DNA of 63,037 bases, the filler included, from Olpidium bornovanus S191 (taxonomy: Eukaryota; Fungi; Olpidiomycota): NCBI GenBank assembly GCA_017911155.1. It is 30 parts of 30 records of this genome, joined end to end, with 100 filler letters (N's around TTAATTAATTAA, not from the genome) between each part and the next. Parts side by side here need not be neighbours in the genome. Positions count along the whole stretch, not along the records: positions 46,201 to 47,563 come from JAEFCI010010892.1; 29 more parts are not named here. One strand, 5' to 3'. The notes beneath the pieces are model-generated. The model saw only the letters and a program-made list of their open reading frames with translations, had not been told where the DNA came from and ran no database searches. Position numbers and translations under genes: made by a program. This document shows positions 2,386 through 47,715 of this stretch, one piece after another (the stretch's first letter is position 1; each line of letters starts with the position of its first letter).

Positions 2386-3157
2386 CATGGAGAACGATTA
2401 CTGAGCCCCCCCTCCCTCTTCCTCTTTCCCCGCTGAGATAACGGCGCGAGCTCCTCGAAGCGTCCCGCGTTTTGGTCACGCCCCCGTGAGATAAACTTCT
2501 CGTCGGCTCCGGCCTCACAGGGGTGCCTCCGTCCGTGCACGGTTTTCACGCTGTCTTTTTTTTTTTTTTTTCTTTCTTTCTTTCTTTCTTCTTTTTCGGT
2601 TGTACGCGGTCGCGGCGAGATGAGGTCGCTCCGACCCTGACGTCGCGGAAAACGCGCGCCCCAAGTCTCGCGGCTTTCGGATCATGGGGAGCCCCCCCCC
2701 CGCAGCTTGTACTCGCCAACCCGATAATCAGAAGAAGAAAAAACAAAGGAAAAAAAAAAGAATAAAAGAAAAAAGTTTGGTTACAGGGGAAAAACCGCTA
2801 GTTCCACTCTTTGTGCACCCTGCGAATGACCGGAGCCGGGTTGAAGTCCTACGAGGAAGCGGATTTGAGATTGCCAAATGTTTCGAAAAAAAAAATGGGA
2901 TTCTCGACGCAGGCATTTTTGGCAACATCTCCAGGTGACTGCTGATTGGAATCGACGACTGGTGCCGAACTGTTGGTTGTTTCCGCTCTTTCCGGCCCCT
3001 CCCCCATCCCCACACACACACAAACACACCGCCACCCCGCCATTAAGACATCTATTTGTTTCTTAAATATTTTATCTTATCTTATCTTATTTTTATTATA
3101 AAATTTTTTCTTTTTATTTTGTTTTTTTTTTATCTTTTTTTAACTTTTTCAGAAATC

Positions 3158-4640
3158 TTACGGGAAGTCGCACCGGAAAAACGACCGCCCGAAATCCGGC
3201 CTCTTCGAAGCGCACCCCGTGGAGCAGAAGCGCTTGTTTCCGCCGCCGCGCAGGCTCCCCATGTCGTACAGCGTGACGCAGCTCTCGAAGCACGACCGCC
3301 CGCACTCGGAGCACCACCGCGCCGCCGTCAGCTCGCTTTTGAGCTTCGGGGGCAGCGGCAGCCGCTCGATCAAGCCGAGGTCCGGCGGGCGGCCTTCGGC
3401 GCGGGCCGCCGCCGCCGCCCTCGCCGCTCCGCCGCCGTTCTCGCGGTCGGGGGAAGAAGACGGTTCTTCCCCGCCGGCTTCGGCGTCCCCGCTCGTTGAG
3501 ATCTTTTCGCCGCCGCCGCCGCCTCCGCCCCGGCGGCTCAAGCCGTCCGCGACTTGCCGCCGGCACAGCTCCGCCAGCGACGGCAGAGAAGAGGACTGCA
3601 GGTAGGCGGAGCGCGTTTCTGTGGAACCGGGTCGCCCGGTCCCACCCCCCCCCCCCCCCCCCCCCCCCCCCCGCGCCCCCCCCGCCCCCCCCCCCCCCCC
3701 CCACCACCACCCCGCGCGGCAGATCCAGTAACGTCAGCTCTCGCAGGCACGTGGGGGGGGGGAAGGGCGGGGGGGAGAGCGCAAAATATCGGAGCCGTTT
3801 CGCGCTCGGCCTCCTCACCGTTGGAGACGAATTTCCCGAACACGAAGACGACGACGAAGCGCAGGTCGGCAAATTCGGAGACCGCCCGGACTGCCTTGAA
3901 GATGTGGCTCACCCCTCCCCGTTTTATGATCTCCGCTTTGCACTTGGCTGTCCGTTTGTGGGACGGGGGAAGGGCGACCGCGCCCGGCGGTTTCAAATAA
4001 GCAAAGTGTCCAAAAAAAAGAAAATGAGAGAGAGAGAGAAAGACATGGGGAAAAAAAGTCAGCGCGATCGCGGCTTTGCACAAATCCCAACACCCGCGAC
4101 AGAAGAGAGAGAGAGAGAGAAAAAAAAAATTGCAAAAAAACAGTTACGGTTTTCGCCCAGGTTCAACAGGACCACCGATCCGAACATCTGGAGCAGCAGG
4201 AGCTTGGAGAACGCCCTGGGCTTCCCGTTTTCGAAGCGCGCGTAGAGGATCGGTTCTTTGGCCCTGTCGACCTCTCGCGAATCGTCGTCGCCTTGGATTT
4301 ATTTTTTTTTTTTTTTTTTTGCGAAAACGGGAGCTAGGCCGTCAGCGAATCCCTGGCGCCCGGTCGGCCGGCCGTTTCCGAAGAAGCGCCGTTCATCTTC
4401 CCACCCCCGGCTTTCATTGACATTCCCCCCCCCCCACTCCTCCCCTCCCCTTCGTAATTTTTTTTTCTTACCGTTACCGCGAGACCTTGCCACCTTCCGC
4501 ATGCGGCTCATGCTCCGCAGCAATACCGGGATGCCTCCGAGTTCGCGCATCGCGTCGCGGTTTGCGTCTTTCGTGGGCGGGCCGGAGGGGGGTTTATTTT
4601 TTACGGTTGACCACGTTAGAAAGGCGATGCCGTAAAATTA
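3158..4640 (-). CDS. Armadillo-repeat protein with C-terminal BC-box/cullin-box-like and Cys-rich region (5'-partial, frameshift in poly-G tract)
   Basis: Spliced exons give DANRDAMRELGGIPVLLRSM and MFGSVVLLNLGEN|PKCKAEIIKRGGVSHIFKAV (ARM-like), then LPSLAELCRRQV (BC box), LPLPPKLKSEL (cullin box) and CSECGRSCFESC..RFCSTGC. Confidence 0.55.
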
Positions 4641-5336
4641 AAAATAGTAAAAATAAAAAATAATAACCCCTCCCCACAATCCCCCCCCCCCCAAAAAAAA
4701 AAAAAAAAAAAAAAAAAGGGCACAAGCAGAAACACGGTCTTTTACAATTCCCCACCCGCGACCTTTCGCCNNNNNNNNNNNNNNNNNNNNNNNNNNNNNN
4801 NNNNNNNNNNNNNNTTAATTAATTAANNNNNNNNNNNNNNNNNNNNNNNNNNNNNNNNNNNNNNNNNNNNGCATGGGGAGCACGCGTTCCCCGCAGCCGG
4901 CGCCTTGAGAAAGGCTAAGAAAAATCTCTCCGGGCTTGCAAACTGTTCTCGTTCCCTGAGTCTCCGCATAAGCATAAGCGACGAACGGCGAATGCGGCAG
5001 AGGAGGGTTTTGAAACGCACAGAGTCCAAGAAGGAAATGGCCAGGAAAGCTGAGGAGAGGGGATTGATGCTAGCTTGAGATGTGTCCGACATTCGAATGC
5101 AGCAAGTCATTTTCTCGTCGGGTGTAGCGGACAGTTGCCAGTTGATCCGTTGCACCGAAAACAACCCCATGGGCACATTTTACTTGCGGTGTGGACTGTT
5201 TGTCTCTCCACCTGCTGACCGGCCGGCTGAGTTTTCAGTGGAAAAAAAAAAAAAAAAACCCCGCTTTCCGGTCGGCGATCACGAAGCCGGGTTGGAGACG
5301 CCACGGAAGGGAAGACGCGGAAAAGGGCAAGCGGAA

Positions 5337-7153
5337 ATGAGGCTGCGCGTAAGAGACAAGGAGGGCGTCTGCACGCTCACTCTCCCGGGCTCGGCGACCT
5401 TTGCCGACCTCGTCGACAAGTATGCGCAGAGCAAAGGGAGACATATCGCCCCTTCCGACCTGGACTGTAGGTGCCTTTCGTTGCAACATCTCGGCCTTTT
5501 CTTTCTTCGCCTTTCATCTCGCTCCACGACACCCGAACGGCGATCCTTGCCGATCTCGTGCTGACAACGACATATATCTCCGCCTACAACTCCCGGCCGC
5601 CAGTCAAGGCGGGCTATCCTCCGAGAGAGCTTTCCTGGACGCCGCGACAGCCGATGTCCGTCTGCTTGCGCGATGGTGACCAGGTCATCGTGGCAGAGCG
5701 GCAGTCGTCCGCGGCGCTGTCCTCCACTCCAGCGGCTCCGTCGGTCGCTCGTCAGACAACCCCGCCGTCTTGCGACGTTCCGGCAGCAACTCGCGTCGGT
5801 GATGACGTCGACGCAGTGCAGCTACCGGATGGGGTGCTAGTGAGACGGGTGCGAGCGCCGCGTCCTCCAGACGGAGCCTGTTGTCGCCGAAGTTTCAGGG
5901 AATCTGACCTTCCGACGGACGCGGCCACACGTTCGGCTTGACGCTGCAGGAAATGCCAGACGACAATTCTTGCCTGTTCGCGTCCGTCGCGTACACCGTC
6001 GCGAGGAACACCGTGCCGTTGCCTAACCTTCGAGAACGTGAGTATTGGCAAGGACCGACGATCTTCCGACCCACAGGCACCTTTGTCAGTGCGGCCACCT
6101 GGCAGGCGAGTAAAACAATACTCTCGGCCGAGAGGCATAACTTGGCGCGTAGCGAGTTTCGATCTTTTGATGTCCTGACAACCGGGCTGGATCGCGATTC
6201 CCTCAGTGGCCGTCTCGATCATACGGAATGACCCGGATACTTATTCCGAAGTTGTCCTCGGGTGCCCTGTGGCCACGTACTGTGAAAAGCTGCTCCGCCC
6301 ATCGAGCTGGGGCGGAGCCATCGAGCTGAAAGCCTTCTCTGATTATTTCCAAACGGAAATTTGCAGTGTTGACGTCCAGGTATTATGAGCGTAATTGTGT
6401 CGAACAAACTGTAACTCCGAAATGATTTAACCGTATCTGCATCCAGACGACGCGGGTTGATAGATTTGGTATGATGCGGAAGAATTGTCGTCGGCATCGT
6501 TGGGCAAGCGCGAGCTGACCTCCGCATGTTTGGCAATGTAGGCGAAGGGAGATATGACAAGAGAGCATTCGTGTTGTACAGCGGTATACGTGAGTGATAA
6601 AGACCTGCGGCCTCTCGGCCGTGGCGGGAAAGTGCTATACTACATTATCGCTTGCCTCGAGAACGCAATGTTGTCAACCTATGTTTGGGAAAACGACGTG
6701 ACAGTAGTCGTGATGTATATCACTCATAGATTACGACGCAATAGCGCTGACACCAGCGCTAGCGATACCGCAGGACGCCGATCAAACGGTACGACCCGTT
6801 TAAACGATTTCCGAAAATCCCATGATCGTATATATTTCCCCTTGTATTTTTTTAACGCCTCCGGCCATCGACGTCCATGGCAGGTGTTCGACATTGACGA
6901 CGTAACGCTAGTGGGCGCGCTGGAGCTAGCGCGCATGTTGCAGAAGGTAGCCTCTTGTTTGAGCCAATTTTTTTTCCGAAATGACCTTGACCATTTCCTC
7001 ACCGCCTTTATATTTTGCTAGAAACGCCTGTTCACCGATCTTGGCGGATTCTCCCTCCGCTGCGACGTCTGCAAAGCTGGTCTGAAGGGCCAGAAGGAGG
7101 CGCAAGCCCACGCGCAAGCGACAGGCCACACCAGCTTCGTTGAGTACAGCTGA
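5337..7153 (+). CDS. OTU1: OTU1/YOD1 deubiquitinase (UBX-like, OTU and C2H2 zinc finger), multi-exon
   Basis: [11 protein letters not shown]-terminus; KAGYPPREL; catalytic [15 protein letters not shown]; [31 protein letters not shown]; C-terminal [31 protein letters not shown] (stop 7151-7153). Confidence 0.95.
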
Positions 7154-46060: not shown

Positions 46061-46219
46061 TTCTCTCCTCGCCGCGTCTGCGCCGCCGGGTCCTGTCTCA
46101 NNNNNNNNNNNNNNNNNNNNNNNNNNNNNNNNNNNNNNNNNNNNTTAATTAATTAANNNNNNNNNNNNNNNNNNNNNNNNNNNNNNNNNNNNNNNNNNNN
46201 CATGCGCATTACAACGCAC

Positions 46220-47117
46220 TAAACCGGCAAAATGCCACCAAATTTCTCCTTGTTCGCTTGTATCGCAGCCTGGAAGACGCTCCGGTACAATTCAATGGGA
46301 CACTTCTCTGGCTAAATATCGGGAAAACCTCGGTTAGACCAGTACGCAACGTACTCTCGAAGGCTCGGCCGCGCACATACCGTGATCTGTAGATGTGATT
46401 AGCCGTCGAGTAGAACGGAGGGACAGCAGTGGGCAGCAGGGAACACCATGGTCAAAAAACACTCCAAAACTGAACACAAAGAACAGCTGAAGGGACGTGG
46501 CTGACCGAAATGCTACAAAAGGGAAAACAGTGAAGCGGTCAAAGGCCAAACGTCAGAATATGACTTCCGGTATCAAACAATCCGTCATAATATAAACTAG
46601 CGCATAATACAACCATAAACGAGGGCCGATGGGCACGGAGATGTGGCGGCGCAAATACGCGCCGCGCACCGTCACGCAGGGGACAAACAGATGAGCGGGA
46701 ACGTGTTTCGCAGCGATACGCGTTCGGCGGAACGGGCAACGCGAAGAAAGCATGCGCTCAATGAGAAAGAGGCGGTGAGGGGGAAAGTGGGAACAAACGT
46801 GGAGAGGAAGGAAACAACCGGGAAGTGCGGTCGCCCTGCCGCGAACGCGTATTGCTGGCAGCCGCCCAAAAGGAAAAGCCGGCAAAATGCAACACAAACA
46901 GCAAAAAAAAAAAAAAAAAAAAAAAAGGAAAGGAAAGGCGCGCAAGCAAAAAAAAGGCGGAGGAAAAGCAGACTCACTCATAGTGGTGCACGTTCTGGCT
47001 GGGCAGCTTGGTCAGGGCAAAGTAGTTGGTTCGGACACGCATCTGCTTCCCCTCTCTGCCGAGCCCGGGCCGCCGCAGGAAGGTCGCAGCCTTGTACGCC
47101 TCTGTAGCGACCTCCAT
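46220..47117 (-). CDS. AGO: Argonaute N-terminal region, four exons including two microexons; 3'-truncated
   Basis: Exons 47117-46978, 46512-46506, 46386-46381 and 46311-46220 give FLRRPGLGREGKQMRVRTNYFALTKLPSQNVHHY-D-IS-IT-PEKCPIELYRSVF..FGGILPVY. The start Met could lie further upstream. Confidence 0.9.
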
Positions 47118-47416
47118 GGCTGCGTCGCTGCGTGCTGGCAAGGATTCTCGGAGCGGGGGAGCAAGCCGGTTTGCGCGGGAGAAGAGGGGAGGGGCGGAGG
47201 AGGAGGTTGGCTGGAGGGAACGGGGAGGGGGGTTGGTGGTTGTGTAGGAAAGTGGCATAAAGCAAGGGGGGGGGGGGGCGCAAGGATGGCACTGCGCACA
47301 TCCAACACCTCGACCCAGAATTTTCCCCTGAATCCCTCTACAGTATAAAACCGGGTAGAATAGAGGAATAGAAGAGCTCCCGCAGCTCCTTTTCCAACCC
47401 AAAAAGTCAACAGTTG

Positions 47417-47458
<42 letters not shown>

Positions 47459-47487
47459 AGGGGGGGGGGGGGGGGGGGGGGACGGGG

Positions 47488-47553
<66 letters not shown>

Positions 47554-47715
47554 TTGCATTGGANNNNNNNNNNNNNNNNNNNNNNNNNNNNNNNNNNNNN
47601 NNNNNNNTTAATTAATTAANNNNNNNNNNNNNNNNNNNNNNNNNNNNNNNNNNNNNNNNNNNNCATGCCAACATTAATGCAAAATGCGCCCTGCAACTTG
47701 GCCCGTCCCCTTGCT

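Follow-up and report, generated by a model that had tools for sequence, protein, structure and literature searches.

Two adjacent microexons predicted within the N-domain motif of an Argonaute gene from the Olpidium lineage

Layout of the locus

The window, that is, the whole stretch of DNA under consideration, comprises 63,037 nucleotides, and the piece analysed here covers its positions 46201-47563. We read this piece as carrying the 5' end of a minus-strand Argonaute gene, of the AGO clade, from an Olpidium-like zoosporic fungus. The predicted features, listed in the direction of transcription, are the following (slashes in sequences mark exon borders throughout).

46978-47117, minus strand: exon 1, 140 nt, ATG at 47117, ending CAC TAT GA in phase 2; product MEVATEAYKAATFLRRPGLGREGKQMRVRTNYFALTKLPSQNVHHY and bases 1 and 2 of the Asp codon
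46978, minus strand: end of exon 1, ...CACTATGA, then donor GTGAGT
46513-46977, minus strand: intron 1, 465 nt, donor GTGAGT, acceptor TTTTGTAG
46556-46552 and 46542-46538, minus strand: branch-like motifs CTGAC and TTGAC of intron 1, 40 and 26 nt from the acceptor
46506-46512, minus strand: microexon A, 7 nt, CATTTCG, between TTTTGTAG and donor GTCAGC
46387-46505, minus strand: intron 2, 119 nt, donor GTCAGC, acceptor CTACAG
46402-46398, minus strand: branch-like motif CTAAT of intron 2, 12 nt from the acceptor
46381-46386, minus strand: microexon B, 6 nt, ATCACG (Ile-Thr), between CTACAG and donor GTATGT
46312-46380, minus strand: intron 3, 69 nt, donor GTATGT, acceptor TTTAG
46337-46333, minus strand: branch-like motif CTAAC of intron 3, 22 nt from the acceptor
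46220-46311, minus strand: exon 4, 92 nt, starting in phase 0 and ending in phase 2 before GTGCGT; product PEKCPIELYRSVFQAAIQANKEKFGGILPV plus the first two bases of Tyr
46201-46219, minus strand: start of intron 4, donor GTGCGT, the rest lying beyond the edge of the piece

Introns 1-3 are all of the GT-AG type, and both microexons are directly flanked by a canonical acceptor and donor with a plausible branch motif upstream, the donor GTCAGC of microexon A being weak. Microexon A finishes the Asp codon, adds Ile-Ser and puts the frame back. The phase-2 end of exon 1 does not fit the phase-0 start of exon 4, which is why the 7-nt exon is required for the frame; moreover, because an in-frame TAG directly upstream of 46311 blocks the upstream extension of exon 4, the residues that precede PEKCP must come from elsewhere. 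These coordinates, splice signals and intron lengths (465, 119 and 69 nt) had been proposed in a previous sequence-only reading and all proved correct on the minus strand. Translation of the alternative routes also agreed with its statement that skipping of the 7-nt exon shifts the frame, whereas skipping of the 6-nt exon only removes Ile-Thr. The predicted spliced junctions are given below.

Inclusion of both microexons: TATGACATTTCGATCACGCCAGAG
Skipping of the 7-nt exon: TATGAATCACGCCAGAG
Skipping of the 6-nt exon: TATGACATTTCGCCAGAG
TTTTGGA (the competing 7-nt candidate, see below) in place of microexon A: TATGATTTTGGAATCACG

Some other traits of the piece are worth recording. Intron 1 is much longer than the neighbouring introns and carries at 46903-46938, on the gene strand, a T24 run and, after it, (CCTTT)3; an Rfam scan of the piece, including this intron, gave zero family matches, with no snoRNA or other RNA. 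About 300 nt upstream of the ATG lies a 134-nt tract (47418-47551) of near-pure poly(C) in the sense of the gene strand, with further C-rich and CT-rich runs between it and the ATG. Similar G/C runs are found upstream in the O. bornovanus homologue described below, and the tract could be a promoter feature or mere composition of the lineage. At 47301 an upstream ATG starts a frame of 107 codons (46978-47301, minus strand), which runs across the start codon in a different frame and would be an upstream ORF only if the leader extends to 47301; the leader of a related mRNA (L002, see below) has only 77 nt.

Spliced product and competing splice routes

The predicted spliced product, MEVATEAYKAATFLRRPGLGREGKQMRVRTNYFALTKLPSQNVHHYDISITPEKCPIELYRSVFQAAIQANKEKFGGILPVY, has 82 aa; its microexon region reads ...VHHYDISITPEKCP...PVY, and the translation around the junctions is ...HHYDISITPEKCPIELYRSVFQAAIQANKEKFGGILPV(Y). 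The proposal that the microexons build the Argonaute N-domain motif HYDVxIxP was examined with the Pfam profile ArgoN (PF16486), which the spliced peptide matches with 47.3 bits (cut-off 30.9, E 3.8e-12) over profile positions 1-60 of 142. The alignment with human AGO1 is gapless through both junctions (vhhydisitpekcp vs VYHYEVDIKPDKCP), and the match to human AGO1 chains has an E value of 8.5e-10. In the N domain of human AGO1 and AGO2 (PDB 4kre, 4ola) the strand V(Y/H)HY-(D/E)-(V/L/I)-x-I-x-P-(E/D)-KCP matches residue for residue, within a comparison that is limited to the first 82 residues of the locus product. The spacing of the family, HY followed by 5 residues and P, and the pattern D-[VI]-x-[VI]-T are thus reproduced as in fungal and human Argonautes. 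The closest relatives have ArgoL1, PAZ and ArgoL2 domains downstream, and the piece ends at 46201 within intron 4. When about 5.8 billion protein clusters were searched by word index with the 82-aa peptide, none had three 5-residue words in common with it, and exact look-ups in the collection retrieved neither the exon 1 ORF nor the downstream ORF of L002.

Enumeration gave 45 candidates of the form AG/x/GT in the 666 nt that separate exon 1 from exon 4. Exactly 13 nt are added by five two-exon GT-AG routes, which read DISIT, DFGIT, DHILT (twice) and DHPSR, both DHILT routes needing a 1-nt exon; GC-donor routes and single 13-nt exons were enumerated as well and yielded no competitive candidate. 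DISIT, the reading with microexons A and B, obtains the top ArgoN score of the 13-nt routes, 47.3 bits as against 39.9-43.9 bits for the 13-nt alternatives tested; taken over all lengths, the other routes give 43.9, 43.3, 43.0, 41.1, 40.2, 39.9 and 32.8 bits. The score is 41.1 bits without the 6-nt exon and 32.8 bits with HY joined straight to PEKCP, and frameshifted products reach 26-28 bits.

The amino-acid pattern alone is weak evidence, since 19% of dinucleotide shuffles give a 13-nt AG/../GT route reading [DE][VIL]x[VIL]x when signal quality is ignored. Under a signal filter whose criteria were picked after the sequence was seen (YAG acceptor, YTRAY 5-50 nt upstream, GTNNG donor), DISIT is the sole surviving route in the real sequence and 0.28% of shuffles yield any. 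As strict YTRAY motifs are absent from the introns of the O. bornovanus homologue, the branch-motif criterion is soft in the Olpidium lineage. For the 6-nt exon, ATCACG is the sole AG/6 nt/GT candidate within the 194 nt that separate the 7-nt exon from exon 4, and an AG/[IV]T/GT hexamer arises by chance in 0.34% of shuffles.

The only serious competitor for microexon A is another 7-nt candidate.

46463-46469, minus strand: competing 7-nt candidate TTTTGGA, acceptor GTGTTCAG, donor GTGTTT, product HHYDFGITPEKCP; judged unlikely

The frame might be restored by TTTTGGA (46469-46463) together with the same 6-nt exon, giving HHYDFGITPEKCP, or the two 7-nt exons might be mutually exclusive. TTTTGGA has AG and GT flanks and a good pyrimidine tract (tgttctttgtgttcag), its route (DFGIT) adds the right 13 nt and passes ArgoN with 43.9 bits, and the 3.4-bit lead of DISIT over it is modest. 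Its donor GTGTTT, however, has no G at +5, the YTRAY motif is absent in the 60 nt upstream, and Phe at this position occurs in none of the inspected fungal and animal homologues, all of which have V, I or L; the O. bornovanus microexon gives Val where TTTTGGA gives Phe. We therefore regard the use of TTTTGGA, alone or in alternation, as improbable and retain microexon A as the 7-nt exon. The strongest support for the microexons comes from the comparative evidence.

Homologues from the Olpidium lineage

A full-library HMMER search with exon 1 as query returned many fungal Argonautes that are distant, besides two relatives that are close. The first close relative is KAG5462199.1 (P0002) of Olpidium bornovanus S191, encoded on contig JAEFCI010002494.1 (assembly JAEFCI; L001 from here on). 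Its exon 1 (3363-3502) has 140 nt, as at the locus, starts with MEV and ends CATTACGA/GTAGGT. A 7-nt exon, ctcttgcag/CGTTGAT/gtgagt (3879-3885), follows 376 nt past exon 1 in the position and phase of microexon A, with by far the best signals among three 7-nt candidates in L001, and 93 nt further cggcag/GTTACGCCGGAGAAATGCCCG opens a 98-nt exon (3979-4076) that ends, like exon 4 of the locus, at a phase-2 intron. The predicted spliced sequence across the homologous 7-nt exon is CATTACGACGTTGATGTTACGCCGGAG, and the predicted product, HHYDVDVTPEKCP, scores 45.5 bits with ArgoN. Comparison of intron positions with related fungal Ago genes, a check that had been suggested for the microexons, thus revealed in L001 a counterpart of the 7-nt exon at the same position and phase.

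The two genes share the 140-nt exon 1 with its MEV start and HHY+GA end, the 7-nt microexon, and the PEKCP exon running to a phase-2 intron; intron 4 of the locus has the same position and phase in L001. They differ in the microexon itself, which is CGTTGAT (Val-Asp) with the strong donor GTGAGT in L001, in contrast to the weak GTCAGC at the locus. The aligned N-terminal peptides are only 56% identical, so the L001 gene is a paralogue or belongs to another species. Intron 3 is absent in L001, the one close relative compared at the level of genomic DNA, where the VT codons are fused to the PEKCP exon, and thus the 6-nt exon is separate at the locus only. The exon lengths agree exactly, 140, 7 and 98 nt in L001 and 140, 7 and 6+92 (= 98) nt at the locus, which indicates that the 7-nt exon is conserved and that the 6-nt exon is the product of one additional intron.

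This comparison bears on a second alternative, in which the 7-nt exon would be spliced straight to exon 4 (HHYDISPEKCP), ATCACG being intronic. Such a product is in frame and passes ArgoN with 41.1 bits, and the L001 gene does have a single microexon. On the other hand, it loses 6 bits and shortens the spacing of HY, 5 residues and P that is constant in all homologues seen, the exon lengths equal those of O. bornovanus only with the 6 nt counted, ATCAC(N) encodes IT exactly there in the L002 mRNA and in Glomeromycota genes, and the chance level of the hexamer (0.34%) is low. A purely intronic ATCACG is, in our view, very improbable, and the reading with both microexons is kept.

The second close relative, P0001, is encoded by L002, which is a Logan contig from run SRR20046439; a literature search on this run found nothing. 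L002 consists of a 77-nt leader followed by exon 1 (78-217), with the MEV start and the same length of 140 nt, and its exon 1 protein is 83% identical to that of L001. The junction reads CACTACGA/ATCACA/CCGGAGAAATGCCCG (TACGA/ATCACA/CCGGAG); the skipped junction is thus CACTACGA/ATCACACC. ATCACA (Ile-Thr) lies directly before CCGGAGAAATGCCC, in the exact place predicted for ATCACG at the locus. Downstream, the Argonaute frame (224-1168) stays open for 315 further codons and crosses several intron positions of L001, from which it follows that L002 is a spliced mRNA, and the hexamer ATCAC(A/G) is therefore present in mature mRNA at the predicted place. Without the 7 nt, the exon 1 frame of L002 stops after 122 codons (78-446), leaving a truncated product of 122 aa, and within exon 1 the Argonaute frame is interrupted by a stop. 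We take L002 to be the skipped, frameshifted isoform, an analogue, in a relative only, of the product that the sequence-only reading had foreseen for skipping of the 7-nt exon. The sole related mRNA that was found hence displays skipping of the 7-nt exon and not its inclusion, which suggests that the skipped form is not rare in the SRR20046439 sample, a suggestion that rests on how the assembler handles small bubbles.

Exon 1 is under purifying selection in the three genes (pN 0.10-0.27 vs pS 0.65-0.78). Taken together, exon 1 and the ITPEKCP exon are each under purifying selection in their own, different frame in 3/3 genes (pS 0.65-0.80, pN 0.10-0.28). Because both exons are selected in different frames, each of the three genes must have an insert of 1 mod 3 nt that restores the frame, and L002 would be an unproductive isoform of a functional gene.

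The same data allow weighing a third alternative, namely that the locus is a decaying or non-productively expressed copy whose mature mRNA is frameshifted as in L002, with no full-length Argonaute being made. The truncated 122-aa product of L002 is consistent with it, and the piece stops before the PAZ, MID and PIWI domains. Nevertheless, exons 1 and 4 are intact and each is under purifying selection in its own frame, all the splice signals are present, and conservation with O. bornovanus extends to the start codon and to the lengths of the exons. We give this possibility very little weight. Altogether, it is highly probable that both microexons are used as proposed, and that the start of the Argonaute gene is read correctly only with them.

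The motif in other fungi

The distant fungal Argonautes retrieved with exon 1 read HHYDVTITP or HHYDITITP. In Diversispora, Funneliformis and a glomeromycete-like locus (L011) the stretch CAT TAT GAC GTx ACx ATC ACx CC is uninterrupted; an intron at the microexon site was sought in these three and none was found. Glomeromycota genes carry ATC AC(T/A) at the position of microexon B. The three N-termini were also aligned and used to scan metagenomes, which gave five loci, all of them distant fungal Argonautes in which HYDVxIxP is unbroken; for two metagenomic fungal loci the nucleotide stretch given above is likewise uninterrupted. Among the sampled genomes, the introns are confined to the Olpidium lineage.

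Several loci met in this survey deserve separate mention. The Argonaute model of Cunninghamella echinulata (L010 1100-1135) drops about 30 residues (NFFEV...PPA) at an apparent 1-nt frameshift, CAACATTTCATGTAAC; the probable cause is a mistake in the assembly, across which the predictor placed a false intron. This model was considered as a case of exon skipping and rejected, there being no intron. Beside the complete Argonaute gene of L011 there is a second copy (3001-6642), annotated as four small genes (ArgoN, PAZ, Piwi and Piwi). This is a tandem duplicate that has degenerated or, alternatively, one model broken into fragments. In the metagenomic contig L012 (108-290) an Argonaute-like N-terminus breaks off after ...IIHY into unrelated sequence without a GT donor, perhaps because the contig is chimeric or the copy has decayed; it is uninformative for the intron question.

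Splicing order and a possible switch

We infer, in part from general principles of splicing, which sites are used at the locus, in which order the introns leave and what regulatory role there may be. Three closely spaced spliceosomal introns would split the conserved N-domain stretch HHY-D-I-S-I-T-PEKCP and thereby give two coding microexons, the 6-nt exon contributing the conserved Ile-Thr. As each short intron has its own donor, branch-like motif and acceptor, recognition probably proceeds by intron definition. An acceptor and a donor merely 6-7 nt apart can hardly be bound simultaneously. Given this crowding, the introns are probably removed in sequence; if the two short downstream introns leave first, intron 1 would then face a normal-sized exon of 105 nt. 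Should the donor of exon 1 be joined to the acceptor of intron 2 instead, the 7-nt exon would leave within a 591-nt lariat and the mRNA would be frameshifted; the weak donor GTCAGC (GTGAGT in O. bornovanus) should favour this skipping.

Fungi of the Olpidium lineage are plant-root dwellers and carriers of plant viruses. Because the assembled mRNA of L002 is the skipped form and the weak GTCAGC would make inclusion tunable, it can be suggested that 7-nt skipping is a conserved, regulated unproductive-splicing switch for Argonaute dosage, and hence for RNA-silencing capacity, in these fungi. We think that this is unlikely, but, if true, skipping would set the RNA-silencing capacity of these fungi. 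In any case, the skipped mRNA of L002 makes the question of whether skipping limits Argonaute output a concrete one.

Gene annotation and comparison with known microexons

The annotation of O. bornovanus S191 was produced with MAKER, drawing on transcript evidence and on Rhizopus-trained ab initio predictors (PMC7865070). In its model KAG5462199.1 (L001 3363-4320; 'PAZ domain-containing protein, partial'), exon 1 is spliced to an AG that lies within an exon further downstream (HHYE/LPFDSQ), so that the microexon and the 98-nt exon are dropped together with part of the exon after them; the model also begins at an upstream pseudo-exon and seems to read through another probable intron (QTFQVRGNSHAGLAALVVA). 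The pseudo-exon start, the HHYE/LPFDSQ splice and the apparent intron read-through mean that the model is wrong at several points. The expectation that gene predictors would miss such exons is borne out by this mis-spliced model and by the fact that the correct N-terminus is without a match in the approximately 5.8 billion clusters. Without the 7-nt exon the correct Argonaute protein cannot be predicted from the gene, and inventories of RNA-silencing genes in the Olpidium lineage will under-count or truncate Argonautes unless they are microexon-aware. The lineage is pivotal for reconstructing flagellum loss in fungi (PMC7865070).

We consider the locus an annotation catch of a known kind and not a new mechanism, microexons being common in intron-rich fungi. 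In Coprinopsis cinerea about 9% of gene models have a microexon of ≤15 nt, whose omission leads to a premature stop in about 6% (PMC12230235). In rice, adjacent microexons of 5 and 12 nt have been validated, and misannotation of microexons is pervasive in plants (PMC8831610). A literature search for work that connects microexons with Argonautes of fungi found nothing. The omission of a microexon is comparable, in general, with unproductive splicing that leads to nonsense-mediated decay.

A microexon inclusion switch has been described for Xlr2 of Trichoderma virens (PMC11121469). The likeness is that inclusion of the microexon decides on the functional protein and that a skipped mRNA of a related Argonaute exists (L002); at the Argonaute locus, as opposed to Xlr2, a ratio that depends on conditions, the presence of both isoforms in one sample and decay of the skipped form are hypotheses. 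With the fungal and plant microexons in general, the exons proposed here share their being tiny coding exons with GT-AG introns on both sides, placed inside a conserved motif at a position kept in relatives, overlooked by annotation pipelines, and shifting the frame when omitted. They differ from those of Coprinopsis and plants in belonging to an Argonaute gene of an early-diverging zoosporic lineage, and in that the 7- and 6-nt exons stand back to back, the second of them through an intron absent from the O. bornovanus homologue. The locus is, thus, a clean example of how closely spaced introns would give rise to microexons, one extra intron being enough to split off a 6-nt exon.
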